From: Octopus sinensis
Taxonomy: Eukaryota
NCBI RefSeq assembly: GCF_006345805.1
Contig: NC_042999.1
Location: 141,794,001 to 141,858,000, forward strand
Direction of reading: 5' to 3'
DNA length: 64,000 bases
A program made the translations under genes and the position numbers. Under the pieces are notes generated by a model, which made no database searches, was not told the DNA's origin, and was given only the letters and a program-made list of their open reading frames with translations. Positions 546-59,961 of this stretch are shown piece after piece (the first letter of the stretch is position 1; every line of letters starts with the position of its first letter).

Positions 546-665
<120 letters not shown>

Positions 666-21362: not shown

Positions 21363-21626
<264 letters not shown>

Positions 21627-27080: not shown

Positions 27081-27448
27081 AAAATGTTTAGTGAACTAAT
27101 ATATTAAGCTATTGAAAGTTTTCAGAAATCTGACTATGAAAAACAAACTCGATGCCCATCAGCCCTTTAATATTAATAGCTTCATTATTTTCGTCAAAAT
27201 ATACAAATTCTAAATGTTTTCTGATATTTGAATTCATGTCAAACTAAATTACAACTTTATCATGTCTTTTTAGAGAATTATTATTGCTAAGATTTAAATG
27301 TTGATCTCTAAATGTATCATTTTTGTAACTTCCCTTTCATTAACACAAGTGATTACTCATTGAGAACTACTTCAGTTAAAACGAAGTTGTTGCCCTTGAC
27401 TTTGTTGGTGTAAGAATGTTCTAGCAAAGCAGTTGTATTATAGGTTCT

Positions 27449-29995: not shown

Positions 29996-30425
29996 AGCAC
30001 CTTTACTATGTTTGTGCGTTTGCATGCACAAGCATACCCATCTGGATAGAGGCATGGTGAAGTGATTAGAAGTTTACTCTGTATTCATAGCAACCCAATT
30101 TGGCAACATTGGCAAGTGCATTTTCCATAAGCTTTGGTCAGCATAAGCCTTGTGAGTGAAACTGGGTTCACAGAAACTTTGTGGAAGCCCACTGGATGGA
30201 TTGCATTTGTAATTCCAAAAGTCCAGACTTGCCACATTTTGTTTCCTACTGATTCTGCCTGAGAATTACACATTCATAGAATATTCAGTCACTTTATCTT
30301 GATTAAACCATTTATTTACACTTATGTAAAAAACAATGTATTCTGTTTGTGAATTAAAATTGGTTGCTCTGCTGTTGCATATTTATTGCATTCTTTCATT
30401 TAATTTATTCTTTCCTTTATTTCAG

Positions 30426-30586
30426 TGGTTGGTAATAAAGTGGATCTTTCTACTCGAACAGTAGACACAAAGCAGGCAAAGCAAATGGCTGAAAGTTATG
30501 GAATCCCTTATGTTGAGACCTCAGCCAAGACACGACAAGGTGTTGATGAAGCATTTTATACACTAGTTAGAGAAATAAGAAAATAT
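30426..30586 (+). CDS. Ras: Ras exon 5 (LVGNKVDL...[24 protein letters not shown], residues 113-166)
   Basis: ctttatttcag acceptor, TAT|gtaagt donor. NKxD (G4) and SAK (G5) motifs. Confidence 0.97.
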
Positions 30587-31354
30587 GTAAGTACTATTGT
30601 GGCTGATTTATTACTGTTTAGAATTACTGGGGTTGATGATGAACTAACCCCTTCCCTTTAAAATTTCAGTCTTTGTGTTTATGTTACAAACTGTTATTAA
30701 AGCAGTGGTTAAGATCAGAGGTAGTAATGGTTTATACAGGAGATAAATGCTTGGTGATTGTCATAGTCCTTAATCTTGACTTATGTTTCATCATCAAAAA
30801 CTTTTGCTCACAAGTGTTAGTTAAACCAAAGAAAACAAGGTATTTTTAAACAAAATCCTTTAGGTTTGGAATTTTTTCTTCACTGAAAGCAACATGAAAT
30901 TTCATGATCAGAATTAACTTTAAAAAACAAATCAGAATGCTGCATATCACTTTGAAGATAATTTGTTCAGTTTGAGGCTTGGCTGTAGTTTCATCAGCAA
31001 CAAACGTGGAGTTGATACCAAACTTAGTTCACTTTGTAACATTTTGGGACAATTCAGCATGATGATCCATTAACTTGAAATTGTAATTGCTTAACTTTTT
31101 CACTATAAAGTTTTAAAATGAATAAATTGCCCCTTTTCCCTTTCTCAGGAAAATGTAGTTAGTTCATAAATGCCTTTATGCTTTTAAACATGTCATATGT
31201 TAAGGTGTTTTTCCCTTGCAAGTTTGTGATCAAATTCATTGAAATGTGTGAGTAATTTGACGGCAAATACAAAATCTGATATCCAGTTTTTATTATACAG
31301 TTTTAGAAAGTTTTAAAAAAAATGTTTTATATCAATTTTCAAATTCCTTATTTA

Positions 31355-35100: not shown

Positions 35101-38100
35101 ATGACTGTGGGAAGGAATGAAGTCAAGCTATATTGTTTTTATCATCAGATTCTTATTTTTCTCCTTTTTCAATAAATAGAGCAGTAAACAAGAATGCATA
35201 TAACAGACATTATATATAACATGCATTTGTTTGGTTTCAGTCTAACATCACACACACACACACACACACACATGCACATTTACTATTGCTCTCTCAGTTT
35301 GTAGTTTCTTCTACTCCTGTCTTTATTTCTAATTTATTCCTTGCTGGCCAACTTGTGTTGAATCTTCTGTCTCTTATGTGACTATGTTGTACTCTTTCTT
35401 TCTTTTTTTTTTTCATCAGTAAGTTGTATTTCTGTGTAAAAACAGTTATGTACGTGCACATGTCTCCCTTATAAATTCGTATGTTCCTGGCCAAATTGTG
35501 CAAAATAGAAAAAAAAAACAAAAAAACTTCTGTATTTTTCTTTCCTAAGATGTTCTCACATATATTTGCATGTTCAGCTTTTTTATAGCTTTCATTTAAT
35601 AAATTATTTTCCTAAGCAACCCCTTCCCCTTTTTTCATCTTTGCTATAAAAAAATTCTGAATAAATAAAAAAAAAAAAATATTTGAAAAGAAGGATTTAT
35701 AAACCTCTTAAATAACCTACTTTAAAGAGGAGACATTTTTCTCTTTGATATTTTCTGCTGCATTTGTTCAACTTGAACAAATTATTTTATGTGAAGAATT
35801 TCTGTTCTCTCTATCACTATCTACTGTACCTTTTAATGTTTTTTAGGGTGTTATTAGGCAGCTAAACAGCTGTGGTTTGATCCACAGGCAGCATCATTTG
35901 TCACTGGCCTCCCCATTCCACATCCCCAAATTGTTGGAGTTGTACAACTATATTGATGCCATAAAACTCGCTCATTTGAGTGAATGACTTGAGCTTTAGA
36001 TACCTCAAACTAAGGCTGGCACAAACCTACCATGAGACTTCCTAGGAAGAAATAGGATTGTCCTCATTTGATGAATGGAATTTCAAATTGAAATATAAAA
36101 TATACTTCAAAAAAACAAAAGTCATTAGGTAATTGTGAAACTATTGTAGCAGCTGTGCCACATGAATACACGCACATATAATTGATACTCAGGTGGTATG
36201 CAAAAACTTAACAATTTCTGAAGGCCGTGTACTCCAGACAGCTTTAGAGGGCTCTGAGATGAATGTTTCTTTTATTTCAATCTTTGTCTGTAGAATTGTA
36301 ATCAAAGCTGAAGTGGGTGGTTGAAATGTTTGCTGCTTAGAGAGTGGAGATCTGCAAATCACGGTTAAACAAATGGAAAGCAGGACAATTAGGAAACTTT
36401 TGAAACTAACAAAATTATATTTAATGGCTTGAAAATTTTTTTTCATTTTATGATAAATTTAGATATCTTTTATTCCTTTTCAACTAAATATTATATTGTT
36501 ATGCTTTCTTCCTTTTCGTAAATTCTATAAATTCTAATCCCTCTCACCTGCCACTCTCTTTATTTTTTCTTTTTCTCTTTTTTTTTTTTATTTTGTTTTT
36601 GGCTCTTTCCAGTTTCTGTTGGTCAAAAATTCCCACCTTTACCAGAGCCCTTTTTATGTTTGGAGTTTATTTTTAACCAATACTTTATTTTTAGATCGTG
36701 TTTTATATTAATGTGTGAGGGTGTTTTAGTGTACGCCTATATACACTTTCATTTGTATTTGAACACAATGTCCTGTAAACTTTGTCTTAGCCTACTTCCT
36801 TCAGTTTCTGCTGCTACTGCTTGCTTCCCAAATTTTGCTGCTGACAGAAGAATGAAGAAAGTTGTTGCTGATCTGTGGCAATTTCTAAAATAACCCCCCT
36901 CTAATGTACGTCCCATAAACTGTAATAAAGTATCTTGAAAAAAAAAGAAACAAAAATTTTTGTCACTTGTTATATTTTCCATTTTCAAAATATTTTATGC
37001 TAACATGAGATTTATTTTCATAGAATAATTTTATTGATAAAATTGCTGTAAGATTTAGATTGCCAAGATTTCCTGAGCACTCAGTCTGCATTAGAACCTC
37101 CTTTGGTAACTATAATGACTAAAAAGAAAGACATTTTTGAAGATTTACAATTGGATGTCTGAAAATTAGTAGCTGATCCAGTTGATGGTCCATTTCAAAA
37201 AACACTAGTTCTGCACTGCATCTCAAAGCTGCTCAACAATCCCTATGCTATTTAATTTAATTAGTCACCACACAGATTATGCACTGCCATAAGAAGCACA
37301 ACCACTGTATAATTGTGTTCACAAAGTGTGAAGTTTCCAATCTTTCTCTGAGTAAAACAACATCACTACTTTTTGCAAGGTAGTCAAAAGAAAAATAGTT
37401 GCAATGATTTTTTTTTTTAGTCCTCTCAGACTGATATAAAAAATGCAGTTACTGCTCAGAATTTTATAAAAAGAAAAAATCTGAGTGGGGGATTAAGTGT
37501 AGTAGTATAGTAGGAATGAAAAGTTAAAGATGGTGGCCCTGAGTTGAGAATGGTATACAGATTGCTAGTTATGAAAAATGGTCCATTGTAGTAGAAACAA
37601 AACAGCATTTTTTAGTGAGTTTTTGTTAGTCAGCCAAATTGGTTTTTTTAATATGGTCTTGGGTATTTTTGTATGTGTGTATTGCAGCATCCTCATATTG
37701 GATTTTTGAACAGTACTCTAGTGTGTTGCTTTGAGCCTTTTAAAAGATGAGTTCTCTGGAAAGTTTGTGACAGCATTAATGTAAAACATTCCTATGGAAC
37801 ATATTTCTGCTCATTAAAAGAAATAAATTGTTATGGAAAGGTAAAATAGTGGGTTTAACACTTTAGAAGCAAAGCCTACCAATGATTCTGCCCAAAAGAA
37901 TTTCGAACTATTTTTGCAAAATACAAAAAGAATGGGTTACTTAATATTCTGAAAGGTTGGCAGGTAGCACACTAAAAAACATTTTACATAATGCCTGGCA
38001 TGTTTAGTCCCTTCAAATTCTGAACTCAATTCTTGTCAAGTGTCAACTTTGCCAGTCATCTGTCTGTGGTTTAATTACAATTTCAATATTAGTGTTGATT

Positions 38101-42329: not shown

Positions 42330-43309
42330 GTTGAGACTTAAATGGCTTTATGAAGGACAGCTTCATCAACATCAGTGATAACATTCAAACTGTCACCAAT
42401 CCCTTCAGTAGGTTGGCCAGCACCTAAAATTTAGACAATTCTAAATTTTGATCATATTCACTATATGGTGATGGATGACATGCAATTGAGTATGGATCAA
42501 ATAGACAATGCTATTAGTATACCCCATGAGAGAGTTGAGAGTATTCTGTACAATGAATTTGACATGAAGGTTTCTGTTCAGTGGTTACCATGTCTTCTGA
42601 CACCTGATCAAAAGTGCACCAGGCTAAACACATCACAGGAAAACCTGGCATTGTTTGAGGCAGATCCAGCTAGTTTCCTTGAATAATGTTTCCTAATCCA
42701 GGATGAGTGTTGGCTTCATCACATTGAATCAGAGACAAACAGACAATCTATACAGTGGAAACACTCTTCCTCACCACCTCCAAAAAAGGCCAAGGTCATT
42801 TCATCTGCAGGGAAGGTGATGGCCTCAGTTTTTTGGGATGCAAATAGCATTGGGTTTATTGACTATCCTCAAAAGGGCCACACCATCAATGGAGAGTACA
42901 ATGTCACTTGCTGAAGCAGTTTATCAAGATCATAAGCCCAGGAAAACTGACGAAAGGGTTCTTGTTTCATCAGGACAATGCTCCAGCACACAAGTCCTCA
43001 CTTTCAGTTGCTATTGTGCATATCTATGGCTTTAAACTAGTTGATCACCCTCCTTATTCTCCTGATTTGACTCCATCTATCACCTGTTCCCCAACATGGA
43101 AAGACACTTGGTTGGGAACCAGAATTGCAGTGAAAATGACATCATATATGCTGTACTTTTTTTACCAACGGATTGAAAGCTTCACCAATGGAACACTGAT
43201 GGAAGAAGTGTGTGGACCAACAGGAGGACTATGTTGAAAAATAAACCTCATTTGCTCACAATCTATGAGAGTGTCTTGGTCAGCCTATGAACTTTTCAGC
43301 CAATCCTTG
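42330..43309 (+). mobile_element. 5'-truncated degenerate mariner
   Basis: DECWLHH, SAGKVMASVFWD, HQDNAPAH, HPPYSPDL; right TIR ends ccttg|TA. Confidence 0.88.
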
Positions 43310-43959: not shown

Positions 43960-44560
43960 CAGTGCTACTTCACTAGATTTGCTTGAGGTCAGATCCATTT
44001 AAATATTGCTCTGCTGCCTTTCTTTGGACTGAGAAGGTATGCAGTCTCCCTCTTTCTGGTAGCTATGGTAACAGAGGCAATGAAGTGGCTGGGATTGAAA
44101 TGACTGATGACAGTCTCTTTCCTCTTCAGTTTCTTCAATTACCCTATGGTAAGGAAGGTAAGGGTTAAGAGAAGTGCTGCCCTCCAATTTATTTGTTGAA
44201 AGGTGAGTGAGAGTGCCAAGTATGAATCTGTTCTCAATATGTGTCTGTAGGCCACAAAATGCCACTGGGAAATTATATTTGCCCCTATCAGAGAGGATAT
44301 CAGTGGAATTTCTCAAGTGACTCAAGTGGATTGTCTCCTCCACTCAAGGTGGCCTTTTTTTCCAGTTCTTCTTTTGTATTTATGTTATTTTTCATGCCTG
44401 TTTTTCTCATACTTGATTCCGTCAAATCCCCACCTTATTTATGATTTGCCCCTGTCATGTTCTCTCATCATGTTCCCATTGTCAGGATAGAGGATGATAA
44501 AATTGGTGGAATTTCAGACAAAATATCTTGCAGTTTTGAATCATGTTCTGATATATCCTA
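43960..44560 (-). mobile_element. Possible ancient LINE (RTE-like) remnant
   Basis: Raised GC and a frameshifted IP..KKG..SNY-like motif; weak. Confidence 0.3.
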
Positions 44561-44575
44561 TCAAGGCCCACTTAA

Positions 44576-44795
44576 CCCTTTCGTTACCAACCCGGCTAAA
44601 ACTGGCTCTGGCTCTGAGTACAAATGTCTTGTTTCCATAAGTTTTGAATTAAAATCTTCCTACAAACCTTAGTCACAATTTATGTTCCTAACACTAGCTT
44701 AATGATGACTAAGTTATTTTACTAAATTCTTTGTTATATTTAAAGTAATTGAAAGAAACACAGAGCATTTCAAAATGAATACAGTAATGAAAGGG
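44576..44795. mobile_element. piggyBac-type MITE, family 2
   Basis: TTAA|ccctttcgttac ... gtaatgaaaggg|TTAA; TIR 11/12. Confidence 0.8.
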
Positions 44796-45254
44796 TTAAC
44801 TTTCATCCTTCCAGTGTCAATAAAATAGTATCAGGTACATATTTGAGTTGATCTAATCAACTAGACAATCCATCACTGGCTAATCATGACACCAGCACCT
44901 GTTCTGGCACTGTTTTTCTATATATTGCTGGCAGAGAAATGTGTCACTGCTGTCTCTAGTGGTCAAACGTCCATTGTTGATAAGACTAAGGAAGGTCAAA
45001 AACACATGATCAAGTGGTTTCAGCACTGGAGGTGGTAGGGATTTATCTCCTATTGATATAAACAAGCTTGTATTTTGTACCAAAAGCCAATATGACAGCT
45101 TCTCTCATGGTATCTACTACAGTATAGTTTGTTCAAACAGAACATCCACATTTAAGTGAAGATACAAATTACCTCTGCTGCCTCTGTCACTAATATATAT
45201 TTGCATAACTTTGTGCCTATGTTAGAAATCATATATATATATATATATAAAATG

Positions 45255-46050
45255 TATACAGTGCTCAGGTGCACTACAACTCATCAGAAAAAGTAACCAA
45301 AACTGCATGAACAGTACATAGAATATGCACAGGAAGTGAACTGTGAATAAGTCTTAAAAAAGAGAAAAAAGCAAGAAGAAATGGGGTGGGGGACATCATG
45401 TATACTGTTGATGAATTTCAGGAAGCATGAAAGTTTTGAAGGATGTAGTGCCTTGATAGCTAATAACTGATGCAAGTAGTTTATTTCATGCTTCAGCAGT
45501 TCTGAGCATGAAAAAATGTTTCTGAAAGTCATGGGTGCCATGTTGTTTTTTGATGAGTGTTAGATGCATGGAATTCAAAAAAGTGCCCAAGATTGTTGTT
45601 AGAAAGATGGTAGGTAATCTTGTGGGTGTCTCGTACCTAGTCAGCTGCCAAATGTCAGATCTTTAATGTGTCCATGCCCAGGGAAGCAAGGCATTCGGAA
45701 TATGGTGCCTGATGGCAGGTATTCGTCTGGTTGGAAGTTTCTGAACAGCTTCCAGGAGATTGATATGCTTATAGGGGTTCCAGAGGGGTGATGCAAACTC
45801 TAGATGTGGACATACCATAGTCATATGCAATTTAAATAGATAGCTGGAGAGCACCTGACAATGGTCTTATTGAGTGATGCTAAGACATCCTTGGCCTTCT
45901 TGACCATCTTAGAGACATGGTTTGTTCAATACAGATCATTGTTAACAATAATACCCAGGTCACATTCACCAACAGACTTTTTAAGATTGGTGTTGTTGAG
46001 GGCGTATTTAAAGCTGGGTTTTTCATCCCAAAATGCATGATGTTGCATTT
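45255..46050 (-). mobile_element. Older copy of the same CR1/L2-group LINE, 3' fragment
   Basis: HLEFASPLWNPY, LLEAVQKLPTRRIP; shares tacagtgctcaggtg 3' end with the copy at 27449. Confidence 0.8.
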
Positions 46051-46522
46051 ATTCTCAAGTAGAATAAACGTATCAGTCATTTAAACTCATACATATATAC
46101 CATTACATTCATTTTTGTTTTATTTCTTAATTATACTGTATACTATAAAGTATCAAAAAGTTTTGATATACATCTGAGACATAAGATCACGCTATGATAA
46201 GGTTGCAGATGAGCACCAAAACTTGTTGACACTTCATTAAGAAATAAAACAAAAGTTATTGCAATGATATATGTGTGTGTGTGTGCATTTTAAATGGTTA
46301 AATGAGTCAGCTTTTCAGTTTCAACTCAAGTCTCAGATTAAATCATTTACAAAGCAAGTATGAACACAGAAAGTCTGTGTGGTTCGGAAATTCATCCCAT
46401 AACCATGTGGTTTCAAGTTCGATCCCACTGCTCAAAACTTTGAACAATATCTTTTTCCACAACTTCAGTTGATCAATGCTTTACAAGCAGTATTTGGAAG
46501 ATAGAAATTAAACACATATATA

Positions 46523-47813
46523 TTAGGTTGTCAAGTATGAAATTTGTAGAAAAGGAAAAAAAAGTTTGCTAATGTTTTATAAATACAAGGAATAGATTTA
46601 TTCATCAAGGTATGCATCCATATTGTCAATACACTTTTGCCATTTCAGTGGTAGCTTGTCCAGCCTGGAACTGTAAAAGCCTGGCAATCTAGGGTCAATA
46701 AAATTTTGGAAGGCCTGTTTTACAGCATCATCAGAATTTAATTTTTTTTTCCATCAAAAAGTTATCCAAATTCTGGAAGAAGTGGTAGTCAGTGGGGGCA
46801 AGATCAGGTGAGTATGGTGGATGATGGAGAACTTCCAACTCCAACTCGTGTAGCTTCGCCTATGCCATTTTTGCGATGTGTGATCTGGCATTGTCTTGCA
46901 ATAAAATAGAAGTGGATCTGTTGACTAATCTAGGCTGTTTTTTTTGGGGGAAGTTTCTGCATCATTTGGTCCAGTTGGCTGCAGTTTACTTCAGCTGTGA
47001 TTGATGAGCCAGGTTTAATGAAATCATAATGGATCACACCTGTGCCAGACCACCAAACCCACACAATCAGCTTCTTTTCATGAATTTTGCTTTTTGGACT
47101 GTATTTTGGTGGCTCATCTTTGTCTAACCATTGTGCTGAACATTTATGATTGTTGTTTTGGATCCATTTCTCATCATGTTACAGTTCAATTCAAAGATGA
47201 TTCATTTTTGTGACATGAAAGTAGCATAATGCAAGCTTCCGAACATTACTGTTTCTGATTTTCATTGAGGTCATGTGAAACCCACTTATCCAACTTTTTC
47301 ACTTTACCAATTTGAACTAGGTAAGTCAGTATTGTTTGCTTGCTAACACCAAACAACAACAATAATTCACAGGCACTTTGAGATGGATCTGACTTGACAG
47401 TGGCTTTCAGTTCATCATTATTCACCTTTGTTTCTGGCCGACCGCATTGCTCATTTGTGAGATCAAAATTACCAGAATGAAATTTTGCAAACCAATTTGA
47501 TACTGTCTGTGTAATAATAACATTAGAATGAAATACTCCATTAATATTCCAAGATGTCTGTGATGCTGCATTTCAAAGAAAGAACTCATATTTCAAAACT
47601 GTACGACTCTCCAGCTTATCCATCTCTAAACAAAAACAGCAAAAAACGATTTATAAATACTTTATAAAGCACAAAATGAGTTAGAATAAAGAAATAGATG
47701 TGTCAGCTTTCTAACAAAAAATAAAGATTGTCACCATATAATAATGGCTCAAAATGAGTAGCGGACAAAGTTTACCATATACCTTACTACAAATTTCATA
47801 CTTGACGACCTAA
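46523..47813 (-). mobile_element. Full-length (1291 bp) degenerate mariner
   Basis: 27-bp TIRs ttaggt(t/c)gtcaagtatgaaatttgtag, 26/27 identical, TA on the left. LQDNARSH and HPPYSPDLAPTDYHFF on the minus strand; no long ORF. Confidence 0.92.
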
Positions 47814-47849
47814 TGCATTATATACAAACGCATGTATATACCCAGACAC

Positions 47850-49400
47850 ATGTATATGTCTGGGTATATGTGATTTGTTGTAAATCGATGAAGGATATAA
47901 ATGTAAGGAAACCAAAAACAAAATGCTACTCTACGAAAGTTCCTAGCCATATTTGTTCTGCACCGAGTTACAGACACTCCTTGGTTGTTCTTACTATCAG
48001 AAATGAGATAAATCAGTGATTGGCCCGTTGAAAACCTGTAACCAACTAACGACGCTTTTGTTCACCATTTACGATAAATAAGTACAATCCCGACATTATC
48101 GTTGTTATTGAATTAATCTGCCAGTTAGCTGAATATGTGACCTAGTTCCGATTCCCGATTGCAGTCTATATATCATCCCTGCAATCTCATTTTCTCACTT
48201 TTTAAAACGTTGAATAAGAAAATAATGTAAAGAAATTTATAAGAAATCCTAGACAATAACGCTGTGAGTCAAACAAAATTATTTTCTACATTTATTCTAT
48301 GTTGTGAGTTCGAATTCCACGTCTGTCGACTTTCCCCTTCACTTCTCCTGTGTCAATAAAACAGGTACCAGTATTATATATTGGATTAATTTAACTGACT
48401 CAATCGATTAATCTTACGTCTAGACGAAAGAAGTGAGTGAAGCTATTCCTTCATTCTTACATTCGTTCATTCCCTTACTTAGTGTATTCTGTTATTCCAT
48501 TCGCCATTATTGCTATCTTTATCTCGTGAAGTCGTGACACGTTCTGCCGTGATCGTGAGACAAAATTCTTCGCAAGCTGCTTCATTGTTTGACTCCAGTA
48601 CATAATTTCCTTAGAAAATCACGTCTTAAATTGACTTTATTGTACGTTTAGATATCTAAGAAACAAAAGGAGAAAAAGATATACATAATAGAACAAAATC
48701 TGAATTATCAACTTGTTAAAACTTACGTGAGATACTTATGAAAAATCATAAATTATATTGCTGAAATTACATTCATGGAATAATTTGGATTATATATTTT
48801 ATATAACAAACAGAAAAGCGAAATATTATTCATGTGTGTATTTATCCACATTCCTATTTATATAATTATTTGTGCAGATAAGTATATTTTTTGATATTGT
48901 ATACTGGATTTCAGTTGTTACATTCTTCCCGCCATTGTTTCCAAGCATAGATATATCGACTCAGGAGTTGTTGTTTTTTAGCCCCATATCAACTCTGATC
49001 GAATAAGCCTATGATTAAACGCATTCCCGTATGCAGGAAACATTAAACAACCTTTGAGGGTGTCATTTGAAAGATTCGACTGCTATTTCTAGTAGGTTGA
49101 CTGACCACATTAGAGGCTCTTAGTCGTTGCTGAGTGGCGTGAAAATGACTCTGCAAGACAATAATACTATGAGAAAGTTATTTTCCAGGGTAAATCGGCA
49201 GATTTTTTTCGTCTGTAGATCTAGATCCAACTAAATGTCATGCAACTATTCGACCCAACTCTGATCTTTCTTCTATTCAACAACAACCAACCATCCGGAC
49301 CTCAACTGAGTTGAACCGTCACAGATGAAATTACTCTTTCTCTCTCTTCCTCTTTTTCTCTCTCTGAGGTCAGCTTTGATTGCTTTTATTTATATTTTAT
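47850..49400. promoter_or_regulatory. CpG-retaining region upstream of the CG-1-like exon, putative promoter / 5' exon region
   Basis: CpG dinucleotides are visibly more frequent than in the CpG-poor Ras introns (e.g. tcgtgaagtcgtgacacgttctgccgtgatcgtg). Qualitative only, not counted. Confidence 0.35.
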
Positions 49401-49722
49401 TATTTTTGATTTGTATAATTCCACTAAAAATCACGCCACAGAATATCAAGTTAGTAATATTAGACATTAAATCTCGACAGTATCTTACATAAACTAGGCA
49501 ACAATTACATTTCATGATTATGTTAACATACTACAAATAGAAAGTAATTTATTTTTCTCTATAAATAGTGCGATAGCGTAGAATTTGATATTGTGAATAT
49601 CGAAATTTATAGGGTTTAAAAAATTTTATCGTGAGATTTATTTGTTCATATATAACTTTCATATAAATTACTGTATTGGAGTTTTGATACCCGAACTTAA
49701 CGAAGGAAACAGGATCATAATA

Positions 49723-50235
49723 ATGGAGCCTTATACAAGAAGAAGATATACAAGACTTGAGACAATAGAAGCTATGAAGCTTTTATGTCTTCCAAGTTCG
49801 AACTTTGTATCAAAAATTCCAAATCGTCCTGCTGGGGGAGAAATCTATTTATTCCAACCTAGACTTCGTATGTATTTGGATAATTGGCGAACAGATGGCT
49901 ATCGTTGGTCGAACAGAGGTACATCGACTATGTCCCTCAACAGACGCCCAGCTTTACGGAAAAGTTTCTTCTATTTAATGACCAAAGAAGGACAGAAAAA
50001 CAATTTTCAAAAGCATGTCTACAGATTACTGGACAGTGATCAGAAAGTTGTTATTCATTATATCGGCGACGAAAAACTGTGTACGGATACGTCGGTTGCT
50101 CCCAGCAGAAAAAAAAGCCGACATTCTTCGCATTCAGTTCGATCCATCTTACCTTTGCCTGAACAACTTATTAGAAAGAAAGATTTATTTGAAAGGAATA
50201 ATGGACACGTTATGAAGAAAGCAGATATATTTGAG
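49723..50235 (+). CDS. Coding exon for a divergent CG-1 (CAMTA-like) DNA-binding domain protein, 171 codons to the donor
   Basis: ATG at 49723 inside the 211-codon ORF, donor GAG|gtaagt at 50236. Motifs RPAGGEIYLF, WRTDGYRW, NFQKHVYRLL and VVIHYIGD occur in the same order as CG-1 motifs. Basic RKKSR patch follows. Confidence 0.7.
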
Positions 50236-52199
50236 GTAAGTTTTATCTTAGACTTGGGTTACTTGTTTGAATTGTAAGAATTGAAAACTTATTTTGAAAG
50301 AATATACATAACGGAATGGAGAAGTAACCCGTACATCTTTATTACTGATAGGTAACAAAAACTTACACTAATCAATGTATAAAGTGTAATAAAAAGATAA
50401 TAAGTTAATTTGATTTTCTATTCGAGTGCAATATATTGCAGATATATTTTAGAAATAGCGTTTTATGTTTTTTAAATTTTTTTCGGGAGAACCGGGGAGA
50501 GGAATATGATAATTCTGTAACAGTTCAAAATTTTTTAAAGATCTTTCAAACGAAGGACCATGTAATATATGGAGTTAGGTTTAATATATAGTATAGTTTA
50601 GCGTGTTCCTCCTAACTGGGATAATAACTGGTCCTCGGTATTGAAAACAAGCGTATTTATAATAGAGAAACAACTGATCATCGATCTTGACTAAATTGTT
50701 TCTAAATGTAAATTTGTGCTCGAGCACAATATAATTGATATTTTACTTAAGAAATACATTATAGTCAGGAATGCAGTTATATATTGTAAGCAGGCTCATA
50801 GAGAGATATATAAAGTACTATTATAAACATCGCAGAGCTGTTTTCTGCTAATGTTGTGTCTGGCCTATATTCCTAATTGGTATGACTTTTTTGTACTGAT
50901 AGCGTTAATGCACTTTGGAAATGTATCAATACCACACGTTCCTATATTTTTATTCCATTTTTATCACTATGTGAGGTGAGTTCATGTTGAGGGAGAGGGA
51001 GAATAAATGCTCCGTGTTTAATAATAACTCATGGTTCTGAATTGTAGTTTTTTTGCCGGTTCCCTCCCTCCGAAACAGGAAGTGAACTCTTAGCAAAGTT
51101 GACACGCCCACTATTACAACTTGGTTTTTAATGCTTACCAAGCAATTAGAACTTTAGATAGTTTAATTTTATTTTTCAAACATTAAGAATGGCTGTATTT
51201 AATTTTTATTTATATGAAATCGCACGAAAAATATAAAAAAAAAATTGTAAGCTAAAAAATAAATGTATGCTTGACTGGATCTCTTTAGGTTGTTTCCAAC
51301 AGATCAATCTCCACCCTTTGTAAACTGTACGCTTGTAAAACAGGAGTTTATGAATTAAGTTGGCCCAAATGGCAAGGCATCTGACTCAATGCTTTACTTA
51401 CGAAAACAATTGTCAGTTATTTAGTTCCCTAACTGAAGTGGTGTCAATTTGTCCAAGATGCATAAAAAAAAGTCATTTCACATCAGCAGCGTAAAATTAT
51501 AATACCATTAACATTTACCTTGCTTTATTCTACACTTCTGTTCTCTACTCCGTTTTAACTCGTAAGTTACCAGGTCTGTATCAGAAGTCATACTTAGTCG
51601 TAGAACAAGTGTTCTCAGTCTAGCGATGGAAAGATATGTTTTAGTTATATTATGCCATTAGTGATTGGTTGTGAAAATTGTATATTCCTCTCAAGTACAC
51701 TGTTAAACATGCGATTTAAGAATGAATGCTTGTTTTTATAATCAGATTTTTCTCTGCTAATTAAAATACTAGTACTGATACTGCAAGATGTTCAGACTAA
51801 ATTTGATAGTTTGCATAAAAGGAAAAGGAAACATATCAACTAGATTATGCCTGGGAGATAACAGTTTACTTAAAGTAGCTGCTCTCAGGTTTCACCTCAG
51901 CCTCAAAAAAGGCTCCAGAACCTGACTCATGCATTCTTCAGTGTTCCTGTGAAGATCTTCAAACATCTCCTTAATCTTGGCCACCAGCTTAGCCTTGTGT
52001 TGCAGGCTTCACATAGCAGTCTGAATTGAGCCTGAAGATCTGTTCAAAGATGTGTGGATGAATTTCAGTGTGCAACCACAGTCAGAAAGCCTGCTGTGGC
52101 TCTTCCTACTAGCCATGACTCCATAGTCTCTGTTGCAGCTGTTCATGTCTCGTCTTACAACCCTTACAGTATTCAACAGGCATTGAGCAGTAGTCATGA

Positions 52200-52930
52200 T
52201 GTTAGCATTTTGATACTCAGTGCAAAGCATCATGATACTGGTAACTCTTTTCCAATATTCAGATTGCTTCCAGTCCTTTGTGTCAGCTAACTTTTTCTCA
52301 ACCACAACTTTAATCTTTATGCTTTCCAATGCTGTTGATTGTTAACCAATACATAAAGCTGTTCCTGAAAAAAAGAGACATAAAAAATTGTATATACCAT
52401 GTTTGTTTTCAATATTTTTTCATGATCTACTCTCAGTGGGTCTTGCAAGATTTTGTGCACATGAACCTTTCAGTGTCCTTTCTATCACTAAAGATCTTAG
52501 TTGTGTTTTATAAGAAAGAGACCTCATAAATATGTGTAAACTTTTATTACATTCTTTTATTATTGAGGTAAGCTTTAGTCCAAAATCAGTTTTTGAGTGA
52601 TGAGGACACTGAGCTATTTTCAGTTAGCTGAATCTATCTAGGTGTATATCATTAAGCTAGTATGAGTAGGGCATATTCCAATATTCCAAGAGGCTAATTG
52701 CTACTTCATCTCTGGAAGTATTGGATTTTATTTGCCATGTATTGACCCATGCTTCTAATGATGATAGATGAGACTTTGTTAAAAAGAATGAGAATCATTG
52801 TTAGTATTTTAGGTTTGTACATCAAGACATCATCTGCAAACCATTTTAATGGAGAGGATGGGTTTACTGAGGATGTCATTTACATATAACAAGAATAGCA
52901 AGGGACCTAAAGCAGAACTGTGGAATAGTT
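52200..52930 (-). mobile_element. Highly degenerate CR1/L2-like RT remnant
   Basis: Reverse strand reads PQ-SALGPLLFLLYVNDIL and FADDVLMY with frameshifts. Confidence 0.6.
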
Positions 52931-53079
52931 GATATAATCATGGTTACTATTAATTTAAGACCATTCAGTAACACCTGTACCATTCTCCTTACTCAGGCAT
53001 CTTATTGTTGTCTCACTCTGTAGTAATTGTGTATTCACTTACTAAAATACTGTCAGCTCTTGCAAGATCTCATCTTTGA

Positions 53080-53390
53080 TAGTGGTTAAGGGTATTCTGC
53101 TCACAATCGTAAGGCTGTAGTTCCAATTCTTGGTGGTGAGTTGTGTCCTTGAATAAAACCCTTCATTTCACATTGTTCCAGTCCACTCAGCTGGCAAAAA
53201 TGAATAGTTCCTATATTTGAAAGGGCAAGCCTTATATTCTGTATCATGCTGAATCTCACTGAAAACTATATTAAGGATACATGTGTCTGTGGAGTGCTCA
53301 GCCACTTGCACACTAATTTCATGACAAGGCTGTTCTGTTGATCAGACCAACTGGACCCCTCACCATTGTAACTAACAGAATACCAGTTAG
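53080..53390 (+). mobile_element. Degenerate SINE (third type; related pieces near 12830-13030 and 17555-17680)
   Basis: agtggttaagggt...gtgtccttgaataaaacccttcatttcacattgttccagtccactcagctg. Confidence 0.5.
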
Positions 53391-53409
53391 TATTTAATTA
53401 GTACATAGC

Positions 53410-53552
53410 ATTAGGAAGGACATCCAGCTGTAGAAACTTTGCCAGATCGGATTGGAGCCTGGTGCAGCCTTCTGGCTTGCCAGTCCTCAGTTAAACCATC
53501 CAGACCATGCCAGCATGGAAAATGGATGTTAAACGATAATGACGATGATGAC
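53410..53552 (+). mobile_element. RTE 3'-end fragment
   Basis: ttaggaaggacatccagctgtagaaac...gttaaacgataatgacgatgatg. Confidence 0.8.
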
Positions 53553-54736
53553 GCATTATTGATTTTGGAAAGATGGCAGTCTTTTGCAGAAAGATAATTT
53601 TAATTAATAATTTCCACACCTGATTAGTCACTTCTGTTGGGGTGTTTTCACTTATAGAAGATTTTAATACTATTATATATTTACCTAAGCTATATATGTC
53701 ATTCAGAAATCATTGGATTAAAGAACTGATGAAATCACCAATGACATTTGTTTCAAGATTATTGATAAATATAATGGAATTGATGCAATCGGAAAAAAAA
53801 AAAGTGGTAGTGAGATTTATTCATTACTTAGATTATTAGGTCTCAGTTGAAATTTCTGATATGTTAACTTGCAGATTGTTTTGTAGTTAACTGACAGTTT
53901 TCAGCATTTATTATTTGACTCATGCAATAGAACTTATTTATAGAATTATTTTCCTTGCAGCAATGCAGAAACAGACTTAAAGAAAATAATTCATATTTGT
54001 TAAGCTGTAAAACTACAGTGGAGGCGTGAAATGAGTAATTGCCATAAAAGAATTGTTTTATTGTTATTGAGTTTATACAGGGTTCAAGGTTTGAGATTAT
54101 TTGTCCAAAAGACATGGTTTGAAACTTTGTTACAAACCAAACATTTCATGCCACTAAACTCACTCCAATTATCTGTTATATGTGAAGTAGTCTGTATTGG
54201 TAAGATTTTGTTCAATAAAGTTTATGAATTAGAATAAGTTGGTGTAGCGGAAATGAATTATAACTATATGGACTAGGCTCCTTCATCTGTGAAGGAATTA
54301 TGAAAATTAAATGGCTATAAAATAGGATTGAAGCATAGAAATGGGGAAACAAACAGGCAATGAGAGGAAATGAGAAGAGTTAGTGGATGCCACTTTTTGG
54401 TAGTTCAGCTGCTGTTTAGTTTTCAATCAGCCTTAATTAAGCAGGTTTATGATCAAAAGTATCCTAGCTGTGAGAATCCCATTTTTTCTATAAGAAGTTA
54501 AAATCTGGATTCCATGGAAACTGATGGAAAAGTTTGATAAGTTCAATTGTTGTGAGGAGTGAAGAATTTAACATTTATGTCCATTGCTCTCTGCCTGAGA
54601 TTGAGAAATAGAAGAATTAGTCTTGTGGCAGCACCATTTTATCTCACTTCTTCATTTTCAGATGAAGGGCAAGAGCAAGAACCAGAAATATTAGATTCTC
54701 CACTTCTCACAATATTTTTAACATACAGAACTTTTC

Positions 54737-54921
54737 AATGCTGTTTTAGCGGTATTTCGTCTGTCTTTACATTCTGAGTCCAAATTCTGCCAAGGTCGAC
54801 TTTGCCTTTCATCCTTTCAGGGTTGATGAATTAAGTACCAGTTGCTTACTAGGGTTGATCTAATCAACTGGCCCCTTCCCCCAAAATTTTGGGCCTTGTG
54901 CCTAGAGTAGAAAAGAATATT
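54737..54921 (+). mobile_element. SINE (56514 family)
   Basis: gtccaaattctgccaaggtcgactttgcc...gggccttgtgcctagagtagaaaagaatattt. Confidence 0.8.
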
Positions 54922-56513
54922 TAATGCTGTCATCATCTGTTTGAGCTTGCTTGGATTTGCCTAACCTAATCACACCACTCATGATCTTGCATAGACACTC
55001 AAGAGGTTAGCTGGACAAAATCCTGTCCAAACAGAGCTGGACAATGGTTTGTACTGATTGGTTGACCTGAGTATATTTATATGGGGTGTGCGTAGGAGGG
55101 TATTACAGAATAAAATTTGCTTATTGTTGAGAGGGGGTGGTAAGGGAAAGACTATTATGGAAAGGGAAAAAGTAGTGTCAAGGGGAATAGTGAGTGACAT
55201 TTATAGTGATAGGATGATGGGGAGGGTTGAGTAGGAGAAAATGCAATGCTACTTCACCTTATACTCAAGTGAATAAAGTGGAGTGTAAAAGAAAGATAAG
55301 ATGGAAGGAGGTTATAAAAGAGAAGGAAAAGCAGTTCCAAGGTATTAATGAGAGAGTGATAAGTGTGATTGGGTGGGTTGAGTATGAGGTGATGCAGTGC
55401 TACCCCACATATGTAGGTGGGTGGTGTGTAGAAGAGATATGAAAAGTCAGTATATCCTCAAGGGAACATGTCCAAGAGAATGTGGTGATAGATTGAGGGA
55501 GGGGAGAGAGATTGCCCGCATGCTCTCCTATCAAGCATCATGATTTGGGAAGACATAGGAAGGTGAGGTTGCAGGATATAGGTGTCGGGCGGGAGAGATA
55601 TATTCTATATGCACAAACCGAGTATTTGCCTTCAATGAGAGGAAGGCTCGTATGATGGGTAGAAGAGATGAGTGCATAGAATAGGCATTTGTAAGGGGTG
55701 GGGATAAGAATGCTTACCCAATATAATAGGCAAGGTGAATTTTTACTATTACACTCGTCTCGTGGGACGAGTATAAACTTTGATTTATGGACTTTTGGAA
55801 TAACTATCTCTCCCTCATGGGGAAGGAAAAGTTTAAGGAAGTGTGTATGTGGGGGGGGGGGGCTTTTGTGAAAGCATTTGTCGTCCCAAAAAAAAATCAA
55901 TTTTTTTTTCACATTTTTATTTCTGTGCCTTTTCCCGGCAAACTTGTGAGACGGGTGTAACAGTAAAATAATATACCCTCTTTAATTACGTATACATTTA
56001 CATGTAGCAAGCAATTATTATTATTATTCACTGCAATACTATGCATTCTGTCCTGCTCGCAAGCGGAAACTTATGTAAATTGTTAAAACAGCTTCCATTA
56101 CCCATCTGTGACTCACGTATATGTTTGTCCATACTTTGTACTGATCCCAACTGACAGCATGTAATGTGCGGACAGGTGTGTATGTAATTATGCTGTTGAC
56201 AAGTTTCTTATCCTGGTTGCTAGCCTGGTCAAATAAATAACTTCACCCGCCTTAAAATAACCGATGTTCTTCTTACTTTCAAACGCCCCAGTCACCTTCT
56301 TTCTTGCCGTCCACTACTTTATCGCAACATCTAGGATGGGAGAGGTGGGTGGATATTGATTACTTGTTATATAATGACGAAACTTGTTGGTTTGACCCTC
56401 ATTTATTTAAAAATAAACACTAAAATCCGCCCCCGACCAAAGGGAAAAAACAACAGCTAGATTTTACCAACTTAACCCTGTGGTTTAAGGGAGAATAACT
56501 CACGTAAAATATT

Positions 56514-56905
56514 CTTTTCTACTCTAGGCACAAGGCCCGAAATTTTGGGGGAGCCAGTCGATCAGATCGACCTCAGCACGCAACTAGTATTTAATTTACC
56601 GACCCCGAAAGATGATAGGCAAAGTCGACCTCGGTGGAATTTGAACTCAGAAGTAAAGACAAACAAAATACCTATTTCTTTACTACCCACAAGGGTCTAA
56701 ACACAGAGGGGATAAACAAGGACAGACAAACGGATTAAGTCGATTACATCGACTCAGTGAGTAACTGGTACTTAATTTATCGACCCCGAAAGAATGAAAG
56801 GCAAAGTTGACCTCGGCGGAATTTGAACTCAGAACGTAACGGCAGACGAAATAGGACAACGCATTTCGCCCGGCGTGCTAACGTTTCTGCCAGCTCACTG
56901 CCTTA
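56514..56905 (-). mobile_element. Young tRNA-derived SINE with internal duplication
   Basis: 5' ggcagtgagctggcagaaacgttagc, B-box-like gagttcaaattcc twice; 17-bp TSD aactcacgtaaaatatt at 56497-56513 and 56906-56922; CpGs intact. Confidence 0.88.
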
Positions 56906-57239
56906 AACTCACGTAAAATATTGCCCATAACTTCGTGAAAATGTTTTCGTTTGGAAGATTAATTTAAATACAAGTTTTAAACATTACTGACAACAGTACA
57001 CATAGAAATATCACCAGTAGCAACGACAACAGACACAACCAAAGAGATAATAACCAGAGAAATGATAGGATAGAAAGTAGTACAACAGGTATGATACTAA
57101 CCCTTTTCATACCCTATTCATCAATCCACGTGATAAATCATACAATATGTGTTGTATTTATCCGACAACCCTACCCTTCAACAAAAGAGTTTGCATCCCT
57201 CAACAGACAAATGACGAAATAGAAAGGATGCTTTACCAT

Positions 57240-58550
57240 AGCCAGTGCTAAGCTAAAGACAAACTTTAGAACAATATGCTAGTAGACGGAGTGGTAGTGA
57301 GGCACAGTAACTCAACAAGAAGTTCGCAAGTAGCCTGTATAAGCTCATACAGTGCACAAAAATTAGGGAAGTAGAGTGCTTCCCCACGGACAAGACCGGT
57401 AGGAGTGGCTGTGTGGTAAGTAACTTGCCTACCAACAATATGGTTCTGGGTTCAGTCCCACTGCATGGAACTTTGGGCAAGTGTCTTCTACTATAGCTTG
57501 AGCTGATCAAAGCCTTGTGAGTGGATTTGGTAGACGGAAACTGAAAGAAGTCTGTCGTATATATATATATATATATATATGTATATGTTTCTGTGTCCAT
57601 CCCGCCAGCATCGCTTGACAATCGATGTTGGTATGTTTACGTCCCCGTAACTTAGCAGTTCGGCAAAAGAGACTGATAGAATAAGTACTAGGCTTAGAAA
57701 GAATAAGCCCTGGGGTTGATTCGTTCAACTAAAGGTGGTGCTCCAGCATAGCTGCAGTCAGATGACTGAAACAAATGAAAGAAAGAGTAAAAGAAAGACA
57801 TCCTGCTGAACTACATCCAAGCAACGCAACCCCACATCACCACAGAAGTATGAGGAGAGAGAGAAGATCCTCAATGCTCACAATAATGACATCCCCACAC
57901 TGTATGGGCTCTGCAAGGACCATAAGGCAACCACTGACCGAGTAACAGGACCACCAACAAGACCAGTCTGCAGAGCCAATGTTGTCAACAACTACCAGAT
58001 CTCCTACTTCCTCTCTGTGATCATATGCCTTCTGATCGAAATGTCCCCGGATGTGTGTGGCAGCACAGAGGACCTCCCCAGCAGAATCAATGACTGCAAC
58101 CATGCCTATAACCTGAAGGGATGCATAATATGCAGTATGGACGTAGTATCCTTATACCCATCCATTGATGTTGATTTTGTTGTGGAGAAATGTGTGGAGG
58201 TGATCAGTGAGAGTGATGTGGAGTTTCATGGTGTTGACACTGAGATTGACATGTGACAATGGTTACTTAGATACACTAGATCGGTAAGAGGTAGATCCAC
58301 CCCCTACTATAATTTCTATGGCCAGGAAGACACCTAGAGGGAGATGGATCTGGTGGACCAGAGCTATATAGACCCTCGAAAACGATGATCAGGTTAAAAA
58401 GACGGTCGCACATATGATGGGTGTGAGTACTAAGATCACAAGCATTTTATAGTTGGGATACCCAGCACTACCAAGAGGAAGGTATAGCCATCAGTGTCAG
58501 TATTGCTGGCGATGTGGCTAACCTATTTATGGTATTGTGGGATAGGAGAT
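57240..58550 (+). mobile_element. Penelope-like element RT remnant, interrupted by a SINE
   Basis: PTDK, PTLYGLCKDHK...PPTRPV, SMDVVSLYPSI and GIAI...ANLFM motifs with stops and frameshifts. Confidence 0.75.
57398..57797 (+). mobile_element. tRNA-derived SINE (second family) with internal (TA)n
   Basis: aggagtggctgtgtggtaag...gggttcagtcccactg...ggtggtgctccagcat...gactgaaaca. Confidence 0.85.
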
Positions 58551-58715
58551 TGTCGTTGTTGTTTAATGTCCACTTTCCATGCTGGCATGGGTTGGACGGT
58601 TTGACTGGGGGCTAGCGAGCCAGAAGGGCTTGTTATGCTGCAATGGCATAGGCCACAGTTACGGTCTCACTTGGTTTGCATATCACCAACTGTCTTGGTC
58701 ACTTGTCACAGCATT
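58551..58715 (-). mobile_element. RTE 3'-end fragment abutting the Penelope-like remnant
   Basis: gtttaatgtccactttccatgctggcatgggttggacgg. Confidence 0.7.
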
Positions 58716-59891
58716 ATTGGAACCCAATGTATGTAGAACTGCATTCCTAGCGAAAATAGTTCTCCAAACATTGACCAGTCATTAATCCTGATGACTTCTG
58801 GCCAACCAGAAAATGCATTAACAAATCAACATAAGTACATAACCATTTGTGTACACATGATCATTGCTTTTCTTCAATTGACCAAGTATGCTCAGTAACT
58901 TTTGGTATGGGTTAAATTTGACATTTAGAGCAGTTTCAAACAATTTTCAACATCATTACAATATCCAGAACACCAGGCTTCTAGCCACAGTCTACTTGTA
59001 GTAGTTATAGGCTCCACAATGATCATCTTTGTGTACAGCTTTTCTGAAAATTTGTCGCAACACCACAGGAACAATAGCCTTGTGTCTTCATCTAATCAAT
59101 TGATTTTGAATAGATGAAAGCCAAAATTTACCTGGTTCAATTTGTAATTAGGGTCCAGAAGGATACCAACTACTGTAAAATATTTTAGTTCAGATTCTTC
59201 CGTCTCCACTAATAGAAATATTAATTATTTATGTTAGTAAAAAAAGCTACAAATGAATCAACCAGGATATGACTAGTATGTATTTTATCAATCTCAGACA
59301 AATTCAGCAGAATTTGAATAGAGACATAACTAAATGCAGCAGTCTACTGTTTCTGCTACTCTAGCATTTTGGAATAAGAAGATATGCTCTTGGGATGAAG
59401 CATGAAAAAATCTTAGTTAATCCTAAATTAACATTAAAACAATTTCTGCAGCAAGAAGCAAATTTCATACTATCCAAGATTCAAAGCAAATAATTTTCTT
59501 AATACTTCATTAATTTCTTTGATAATTTACAAATAAAACTTTATCTTCAACTCTAATGGTATACGTGAAACTATTCTTTCCTTTTAGTGTATATAAAACT
59601 GTATTATTTGAAGTAAAATAATTAAATATTTCGTATTTGGATTTGGTTTGCATGATTCTTTATGTGAGTTCATGTGTTAAAGCATATTCTCTTGTGTCTG
59701 GAGAGAGAAGGTTGCAAGACATAACAAAAAGTTTTAGAAAAATAAATGAGTGGAAATTTTACTGGTGAGTGTGTTAAATTATAAGGCACTAAAAGAGAAT
59801 GACTCTTCCCAGACACAACAGAATTAACAATTAACTCTACTAATTTGCCGTTGTTATCATCATCATCGTAATTTGTCGTTTTATATTTTAG

Positions 59892-59961
59892 ATAAAAAAA
59901 GTCTGGGAAAAAGTGGTCCCATCCCAAGCTATATACAGCAACTACCTTCTGGATAGTCATC
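59892..59961 (+). other. Exon-like module (IKKVWEKVVPSQAIYSNYLLDSH), gene assignment uncertain
   Basis: tatattttag acceptor, C|gtaagt donor. Open only in phase 0, which matches the phase-0 donor at 50236. Confidence 0.35.

Follow-up and report, generated by a model that had tools for sequence, protein, structure and literature searches.

In the Octopus sinensis window examined here (the whole stretch of DNA analysed, 64 kb in length), coding exons 1 and 2 of a host gene conserved among octopods can probably be recognised. In the explanation that we favour, and to which this probability applies as a whole, the gene joins the domesticated DNA-binding domain of a Mutator-like (MULE) transposase to a BTB domain, and its product would be a regulator that binds specific DNA sequences as a dimer. 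CG-1, the type to which this DNA-binding domain belongs, has hitherto been regarded as the hallmark of a single ancient family, CAMTA.

An octopod gene and its Argonauta orthologue

Exon 1 starts at the first ATG within an open frame of 211 codons, contains the entire DNA-binding domain as well as a basic, serine-rich linker, and ends in ATA TTT GAG, immediately followed by the donor GTAAGT (Table 1). These exon limits and the donor had been given in an earlier note on this DNA, together with the motifs RPAGGEIYLF, WRTDGYRW, NFQKHVYRLL and VVIHY and a basic, NLS-like patch; all of them were found again, the motifs in the same order and the patch as SRKKSRHSS. The placement of the domain at the N-terminus, within one exon closed by a canonical donor, likewise agrees with both the open frame and the Argonauta alignment. 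The basic patch that follows the domain is a candidate nuclear localisation signal; it is kept in Argonauta (ARKKSRHSSH) and not in more distant homologues.

The ATG of exon 1 is the putative start codon. The Argonauta gene model begins in a 21-nt upstream mini-exon, the acceptor of which corresponds to AC in the window, and the ACG of Argonauta is replaced in the window by an in-frame ATG. The mini-exon itself was not found in a search across the window. Upstream of the ATG, TATAAATA might tentatively be assigned as a core-promoter element, and its region aligns only loosely with Argonauta. A scan of the locus for bacterial-type promoters and terminators, with models that are not apt for a eukaryotic locus, returned nothing. 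Transposon debris, such as RT ORFs and mariner-like pieces, is abundant in the window.

The position of the donor is common to the window, Argonauta and two more distant homologues (P0001 and P0002), which are 61–66% identical and have the same exon end. These two are ORFs called on one metagenome contig and one read-run assembly contig, and the prokaryote-style calls run past the donor into 'VSF...'. They were the only ORF fragments returned by a word-indexed homologue search, and a repeat of this search with a 35-sequence alignment of the family yielded the same two. Exon 2 was located by means of the Argonauta exons and is identical to its Argonauta counterpart in length and in both splice sites; its frame is open (IKKVWEKVVPSQAIYSNYLLDSH) and encodes a poorly conserved linker. 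Searches for THAP and BTB exons across the 64-kb window found none. The remaining exons, those of the BTB domain among them, presumably lie past position 64000, where the window ends 13.8 kb downstream of exon 1.

Table 1. Features of the locus, numbered from the first nucleotide of the window
Feature	Position	Strand	Remarks
Possible core-promoter element TATAAATA	49560..49567	+	156 bp upstream of the ATG; read from sequence
Coding exon 1 of the CG-1-like/BTB gene	49723..50235	+	171 sense codons; ORF, Pfam and Argonauta alignment
First ATG of exon 1	49723..49725	+	Putative start codon
CG-1-like DNA-binding domain	49750..50076	+	Residues ~10-118; AlphaFold2 model, PDB matches and MULE-linked profile
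DGYRW (D58-W62), DxxxW motif	49894..49908	+	Start of the predicted DNA-recognition strand/loop
Basic patch PSRKKSRHSS	50098..50127	+	Candidate nuclear localisation signal; alignments; putative function
Final codon of exon 1, GAG	50233..50235	+	
Intron 1 splice donor GTAAGT	50236..50241	+	Phase 0
Intron 1	50236..59891	+	9.66 kb, vs ~2.1 kb in Argonauta
Coding exon 2	59892..59961	+	70 nt; acceptor ttttag, donor gtaagt
Block collinear with Argonauta	35289..36946		Aligns with L003 87-1713
Block collinear with Argonauta	48444..48518		Aligns with L003 8933-9001
Block collinear with Argonauta	49682..50268		Aligns with L003 10553-11132, 81% identity
Block collinear with Argonauta	51080..51186		Aligns with L003 11892-12000

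The best full-length relative (P0003) is GAB1599697.1, a protein of 722 aa entered as 'uncharacterized protein LOC115209547 [Argonauta hians]'. The exon 1 protein is 82% identical to its residues 8-184, with a DNA identity of 81%. In a Pfam scan, GAB1599697.1 contains CG-1 (33.5 bits) and a C-terminal BTB/POZ domain (30 bits, vs a cut-off of 20.5) and nothing else; TIG, ankyrin and IQ domains are absent from it, and it has no MULE match. The BTB domain attributed to the window gene is carried over from the architecture of this orthologue. The Argonauta locus (L003, a 17-kb gene) is collinear with the window through the blocks listed in Table 1, between which most of the DNA is unalignable. As regards expression, another contig (L004) carries an intronless ORF of 901 codons that unites regions which are separate exons in Argonauta. 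L004 is therefore a spliced mRNA, and at least one member of the family is expressed.

Purifying selection on the domain is strong (dN/dS 0.04). By the Nei-Gojobori method, the comparison between the window and Argonauta gave a dN of 0.022, a dS of 0.57 and an omega of 0.038 for the domain, and that between P0001 and P0002 an omega of 0.07; the linker evolves faster than the domain (omega 0.15-0.5). Synteny and dN/dS had both been suggested beforehand as checks, and both came out in favour of a conserved gene.

These data also bear on whether exon 1 belongs to a host gene at all, or is instead an inert MULE fragment or a part of an active element. The nearest non-cephalopod relatives of the domain are MULE transposases, and the window is rich in transposon debris, both of which would fit a MULE copy. 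An omega of 0.04 over a dS of 0.57, together with synteny in two octopod genera and conservation of the donor and of exon 2, makes such a copy highly improbable. No inverted repeats bracket exon 1 within positions 44000-56000 of the window (12 kb), and no transposase core, DDE or SWIM sequence was detected near it, none of 175 retrieved family proteins matching the window outside the exon; the earlier note had likewise recognised neither a transposase domain nor TIRs nearby. The domain is present in one copy in the window. On the grounds of selection, synteny, splice conservation and the lack of a core or TIRs, the reading as a transposon, dead or active, was rejected. What is found at the locus is the set of marks of a domesticated DNA-binding domain, namely nearest relatives that are transposase-borne, purifying selection and synteny with Argonauta.

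The CG-1-type domain and its predicted fold

CG-1 (PF03859) is the sole significant Pfam family in exon 1 (E 2.1e-9, 37.6 bits vs a gathering cut-off of 23.5), and exon 1 is the only family match anywhere in the 64-kb window. The match covers exon residues 23-114, which correspond to profile positions 21-114 of 116. A CG-1-like domain had been proposed earlier from its motifs, and this HMM comparison excludes a chance resemblance.

In the 35-sequence alignment of the family, the only conserved columns are P36, G39, D58, W62, G66, K80, F95, H112, Y113 and G115, with D58 invariant and W62 nearly so. These last two residues delimit the DGYRW motif, which would contact DNA in the exon 1 domain. 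In folds of the CG-1/WRKY/GCM1 type, the DxxxW motif stabilises the DNA-recognition loop (PMC9252788). No zinc-ligand set of Cys and His residues (C-C-H-H/C) is conserved in the same alignment, and the domain is therefore zinc-independent, unlike the classical WRKY-GCM1 fingers.

For comparison with CAMTA, we used an N-terminal sequence that we take to be that of Arabidopsis CAMTA3. Its residue numbers fit the six that are given in a mutational study of this protein, in which changes of W26, W75 (as W75A), H88, YY102/103 or Y132 abolish DNA binding (PMC10417383). Relative to the assumed CAMTA3 sequence, W75 is kept in exon 1 as W62, YY102/103 as F82 F83 and Y132 as Y113. W26 is replaced by R11, and H88 falls within a missing hairpin: after the DGxxW strand, the hairpin is ~8 residues shorter in exon 1 than in this CAMTA3 CG-1 sequence. 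The replaced middle segment to which the earlier note had drawn attention corresponds to the absence of this ~8-residue CAMTA3 insertion. The exon 1 domain thus resembles CAMTA CG-1 (PF03859) in sequence homology above the gathering score, in its alpha-beta5 class, in DxxxW, in the aromatic pair of strand 3 and in the C-terminal HY. It differs in the shorter hairpin, in the non-conservation of W26 and H88, in being contained in a single N-terminal exon, in the lack of TIG, ankyrin and IQ domains from its Argonauta orthologue, and in standing far nearer to transposase-borne domains (114.8 vs 37.6 bits, see below).

To our knowledge, no experimental structure exists for any CG-1 domain. A search of PDB sequences found none, and its only match was a borderline one to the NAC domain of ANAC019 (E 0.01). 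An AlphaFold2 model of the domain, with the 35-sequence family alignment as input, reached a pLDDT of 94.2 and a pTM of 0.87. The model consists of one helix (14-21), one short strand (41-44) and four long strands in antiparallel arrangement (62-72, 75-87, 90-102 and 105-115). When the model was compared with the PDB by Foldseek, the top matches were the NAC domains of ANAC019 and ORE1 (E 1.5e-3 to 1e-2, probability ~1.0), followed by the WRKY domains of AtWRKY18, AtWRKY11 and RRS1-R (TM up to 0.60, normalised on the target) and then by unrelated folds of low probability; WOPR and Ssr4 structures were absent from the top 50 matches. The fold check by AlphaFold against NAC and WRKY structures that had been proposed beforehand was therefore positive.

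According to its model, the domain has the alpha-beta5 topology of a zinc-less CG-1 domain of the WRKY/GCM1 clan. AlphaFold models have already placed CG-1 in this clan, within a tighter alpha-beta5 subgroup that also contains NAM, Gti1/Pac2 and Ssr4-N (Holm 2022, PMC9252788), and the NAC and WRKY matches of our model agree with this placement. The likeness to NAC (NAM) and WRKY consists of these best structural matches and of the weak ANAC019 sequence match, and that to Gti1/Pac2 (WOPR), of the same sub-clan as CG-1 and NAM, comes from the literature only (PMC9252788). Unlike the NAC and WRKY domains, to which its identity is 14-23%, the exon 1 domain has no WRKYGQK motif, zinc site or NAC dimerisation subdomain.

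Instead of a transcription factor, the protein could be a substrate adaptor of Cul3 ubiquitin ligase or a chromatin scaffold, with a CG-1-like domain that no longer binds DNA. Cul3 is often bound by BTB domains, and W26 and H88, both required in CAMTA3, are not conserved here. Functional shifts have also been noted within the superfamily, where loss of DNA binding has been proposed for Ssr4-N and At3g16750 (PMC9252788). We nevertheless consider a product of this kind quite improbable: DxxxW, the aromatic pair F82 F83 (Y102 Y103 in CAMTA3) and Y113 (Y132) are retained, the closest relatives are the DNA-binding heads of transposases, a basic patch follows the domain, and related isoforms add further DNA-binding domains of the THAP and ZSWIM3_N/FAR1 types.

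Relatives among Mutator-like transposases

When 1.84 billion representative proteins were searched exhaustively with a profile, 401 relatives came to light. Most of the long ones are either metazoan MULE transposases with an N-terminal CG-1-like domain or fusions with BTB, C2H2, THAP or FLYWCH domains. Three groups can be distinguished: (i) uninterrupted ORFs in which the CG-1-like domain lies N-terminal to a MULE core, often with SWIM, Ulp1 protease or PHD domains, (ii) fusions with other domains, and (iii) proteins, Capitella teleta R7TPW2 among them, in which the CG-1-like domain is repeated 2-6 times in tandem, with a transposase linker (PHGN.K...RT.PSV) retained after the last repeat and no DDE core. 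The first group includes proteins of Ptychodera flava (XP_070546015.1), Clytia hemisphaerica (XP_066919406.1, with SWIM), Trinorchestia (KAF2360161.1) and Leptotrombidium (RWS22943.1, with Ulp1). Both CG-1 and MULE exceed the curated Pfam cut-offs in P0028 (28.2 and 33.9 bits, respectively), P0042 (28.5 and 30.7 bits), P0108 (36.5 and 30.8 bits) and P0145 (31.6 and 29.5 bits), and 44 of the 164 retrieved proteins are matched by an HMM built locally from the MULE core region. In the second group, BTB fusions occur in the fish Pholidichthys, in the annelid Owenia and in P0064, the BTB domain being N-terminal in the fish and in Owenia; fusions with C2H2 arrays occur in Pholidichthys and in the bivalve Potamilus, and one with FLYWCH in P0023. 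This group also contains P0006, which combines THAP, CG-1 and BTB, and P0157, which combines a ZSWIM3_N/FAR1-type domain with CG-1 and BTB.

A profile was built from 28 MULE-linked domains, with no cephalopod sequence among them. It scores exon 1 at 114.8 bits, approximately three times the Pfam CG-1 score of 37.6 bits, and the CG-1 sequence that we take to be that of Arabidopsis CAMTA3 at 54.5 bits. These scores indicate that the three groups are homologous and that the cephalopod domain sits with the transposase-borne branch.

The same comparison weighs on the idea that exon 1 encodes the DNA-binding domain of a true but highly divergent CAMTA, whose TIG, ankyrin and IQ exons lie far off in large introns. 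Introns of this kind are typical of cephalopod genes, CG-1 is the sole significant Pfam family, and the window stops 13.8 kb downstream of the exon, with the gene's own 3' exons out of view; TIG, ankyrin and IQ exons were not found in the 64 kb. A CAMTA of this form is, however, extremely improbable. The collinear orthologue is a complete model of 722 aa that ends in BTB without TIG, ankyrin or IQ, related spliced transcripts likewise end in BTB, and the score on Pfam CG-1 is 37.6 bits against 114.8 on the MULE-linked profile. TIG and IQ are absent from all 44 of the long relatives scanned; among these relatives, only Haliotis P0100 has ankyrin repeats, and it combines them with a Ulp1 protease domain. 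The CAMTA-orthologue reading was rejected, as it is contradicted by both the architecture of the orthologue and the profile scores. Judged by domain content, the exon 1 gene is not a CAMTA, as the earlier note had held: its orthologue P0003 and its relatives P0006 and P0157 carry BTB instead.

A distance-based neighbour-joining tree of 79 domains, rooted on the single assumed CAMTA3 sequence, places the window, Argonauta, P0001, P0002, P0006/P0157 and P0007 in one cephalopod group. This group is monophyletic in 100 of 100 bootstraps and, again in 100 of 100, nested inside the remaining domains; the closest clade around it includes a MULE-linked member in 74 of 100. The MULE-linked versions come from a cnidarian, a hemichordate, arthropods, annelids, molluscs and fishes. 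Taxonomic breadth and the distance tree together suggest that the transfer went from transposon to host. A Mutator-like origin, which the earlier note had raised as a possibility, is now the best-supported reading, with the MULE relatives, the MULE-only profile and the nesting in the tree all pointing to it.

The direction could also have been the reverse, with a host CG-1-type domain captured by MULEs early in animal evolution and the cephalopod gene being of host descent. Two papers are compatible with such a capture, one describing the CAMTA CG-1 domain as ancient and widespread (PMC8591267) and the other the capture of host sequences by MULEs (PMC9168764). In addition, the cephalopod proteins are without a transposase core, and no remnant of the transposase linker (PHGN..RTxPSV) was found in them. 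We regard this history as unlikely, given that the MULE-linked versions are taxonomically wide while the BTB fusion clusters with sequences of Argonauta and cephalopod-like ones only, and that the cephalopod clade is nested in the MULE-linked radiation in 100 of 100 bootstraps. Moreover, the varied fusions (N-terminal BTB, C2H2 arrays and linker-bearing multi-CG-1 proteins) resemble repeated, independent captures from a mobile pool.

A relationship between MULEs and the WRKY-GCM1 superfamily has already been described (PMC1702500), in a survey that makes no mention of CG-1 or CAMTA. The MULE DNA-binding domains of WRKY-GCM1 type and their descendants (FAR1/FHY3, ZSWIM3-N and FLYWCH) are similar to the present family in several respects: in the relatives, an N-terminal DNA-binding domain precedes a MULE DDE core and SWIM, the superfamily is the same (PMC1702500, PMC9252788), and a transposase DNA-binding domain is reused as a transcription factor. 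The classical MULE domains differ in being zinc-chelating and of C2H2 type, whereas the exon 1 family has no conserved Cys/His set; FHY3 differs in retaining the transposase core, whereas the exon 1 gene retains the DNA-binding domain only. A search for TIRs and TSDs in contigs of related MULEs (L005 and L006) found one internal inverted duplication of 282 nt and one imperfect pair of 29 nt without a clear TSD.

Proposed origin, function and significance

The sequence relationships suggest that the DNA-binding domain derives from the N-terminal module of a metazoan MULE transposase. In the course of domestication, this head would have become part of a host gene that has a BTB domain, and the transposase linker and DDE core would have been lost. 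In the resulting protein, a long low-complexity linker would follow the domain and lead to a C-terminal BTB/POZ domain, an arrangement seen in the orthologue and presumed here. The sheet that starts at DGYRW may recognise a particular DNA sequence through the major groove, in the manner of WOPR, CG-1, NAC and WRKY domains, and the BTB domain may form dimers or oligomers and engage partners such as co-repressors, chromatin factors or architectural factors. The product would thus be a nuclear, sequence-specific regulator. Among DNA-binding proteins with BTB domains, repressor or architectural roles are the commonest. Element ends are the recognition targets of transposase DNA-binding heads, and ready binding sites could therefore have come from scattered relics of the ancestral element. 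It is a matter of speculation that present binding sites may derive from such relics of transposon ends.

Comparable combinations are found in Drosophila mod(mdg4) and pipsqueak, which we take to be BTB+FLYWCH and BTB+HTH_psq proteins, respectively. Like these two and the octopus THAP-BTB and CENPB-BTB proteins, the present gene would associate a BTB oligomerisation domain with a transposase-derived DNA-binding domain; unlike in them, the order is reversed, with the DNA-binding domain N-terminal and BTB C-terminal. The gene fits a trend in octopuses, where most THAP and CENPB factors have BTB as a partner (PMC10027918); the CG-1-like domain lies outside the six families catalogued in that study.

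Several elements of this picture are already known, namely the CG-1 family, its clan placement (PMC9252788), the link between MULEs and WRKY-GCM1 (PMC1702500), fusions of BTB with transposon-derived DNA-binding domains (PMC10027918) and the gene itself, as an automatic 'uncharacterized protein' prediction. The literature searched, which took in only a minority of the subscription journals, contained no statement that CG-1-type domains serve as MULE DNA-binding heads, no description of a CG-1/BTB gene family and no paper combining CG-1 or CAMTA with WRKY-GCM1. The earlier note did not have in view the BTB partner outside the window, exon 2 or the link between CG-1 and WRKY/NAC published in 2022 (PMC9252788).

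More generally, it may be hypothesized that CG-1-type domains form a large, zinc-less class of metazoan MULE DNA-binding heads, distributed from cnidarians to fishes and repeatedly recruited by hosts, although we would put the chances of this slightly below even. The CAMTA DNA-binding domain would then be tied to the exchange between transposons and transcription factors that has already been proposed for WRKY, GCM1, FLYWCH and FAR1. The recruits under this wider reading would be the cephalopod genes that combine a THAP or FAR1-type domain with CG-1 and BTB, the BTB and C2H2 fusions of fishes, annelids and bivalves, and the multi-CG-1 coiled-coil proteins.

The locus represents a second, non-CAMTA use of the CG-1 domain, in a conserved cephalopod gene, and many animal MULE transposases carry the same domain as their DNA-binding head. 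Cephalopods are known for expansions of BTB-linked, transposon-derived factors. If the proposed origin is correct, it would add a new type of DNA-binding domain to the catalogue of transposon-derived transcription factors and would provide a concrete, lineage-specific cephalopod regulator, single-copy as far as the window shows. The homologues on transposases, for which genome sequences reveal the binding sites (the element ends), would then inform how CG-1 domains recognise DNA.

The CG-1/BTB locus in two octopod genera

Between the window and the collinear locus of the Argonauta hians orthologue (L003), the coding region of the CG-1/BTB gene begins differently (window 49700-49725 versus L003 10560-10600). 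In Argonauta, a 21-nt mini-exon (MSFSLAE) is joined to the acceptor cttag/GAAG, which corresponds to cttaac in the window, and the ATG of the window aligns with an ACG. The predicted coding start of this gene has turned over between the two genera.

Upstream of the gene, and collinear with it in the same comparison, a 1.66-kb block (window 35289-36946) aligns at 80% identity with L003 87-1713. The alignment contains numerous small indels and no reading-frame preference. The block is a conserved non-coding element. It may be the 3' UTR belonging to the Ras gene upstream, or else have a regulatory or lncRNA role.

Neighboring features of the window

The Ras-family coding sequence includes an exon, spanning codons 37-64 approximately, that is present in two tandem versions. 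Both carry a cag/AGGA acceptor and a CAG/gttgg donor, and the effector-loop residue Y40 is replaced by H between them. Because their length of 85 nt is not divisible by 3, the two look like mutually exclusive alternative exons.

Among transposon-like sequences, an element bounded by inverted repeats (ATTAGGTTGTCAAGT...) resembles an insertion of the mariner or MITE kind. It lies 1.9 kb upstream of the CG-1-like exon and does not bracket it. The debris found at four other stretches includes LINE-type reverse-transcriptase ORFs, two related copies of which have a ...RRLRWYGH...GRGRPRKTW tail in common, as well as a mariner-type transposase fragment (HQDNAPAHKS...DHPPYSPDL).

Coordinates of features in the window and in contig L005
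Feature	Sequence	Position	Strand	Description
Ras-family exon, version one	window	562-646	+	85 nt, 28-residue translation
Ras-family exon, version two	window	702-786	+	85 nt, 28-residue translation
Other Ras exon	window	21489-21599
Other Ras exon	window	about 22864-22902
Other Ras exon	window	30425-30607
Transposon debris	window	24503-24799
Transposon debris	window	27438-28514	-
Transposon debris	window	31371-32774	+
Transposon debris	window	42908-43237
Inverted-repeat element	window	46522-47814		1.3 kb; 31-nt terminal inverted repeats, 94% complementary
Ulp1 protease (Peptidase_C48) + PHD ORF	L005	2453-3409

Relatives of the CG-1-like domain

In the metagenome contig L005, an ORF encoding a CG-1-like/MULE transposase is directly followed by a Ulp1 protease and PHD ORF. 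This second ORF is the accessory gene characteristic of certain MULE lineages. Within the same contig, 1-282 and 1742-2023 form an internal inverted duplication of 282 nt.

Five other relatives, P0004 (Capitella teleta R7TPW2), P0005, P0008, P0010, and P0011, contain two to six tandem CG-1-like repeats. The final repeat is followed by a retained transposase linker motif, PHGN(R)K..RTCPSV..PR..KQ, the DDE core is absent from all five, and at least four (P0005, P0008, P0010, and P0011) end in a C-terminal coiled coil. These proteins look like a separate domesticated family.

Finally, L004 (a Logan SRR8281692 contig) and the proteins P0006 / P0157 represent two transcript forms of one related gene. 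Both forms contain the CG-1-like and BTB domains and they differ at their 5' ends: one opens with a THAP domain, the other with a WRKY-GCM1 domain of the ZSWIM3_N/FAR1 type (60 bits). A single gene therefore appears to carry up to three distinct DNA-binding modules of transposon origin, by way of alternative first exons.
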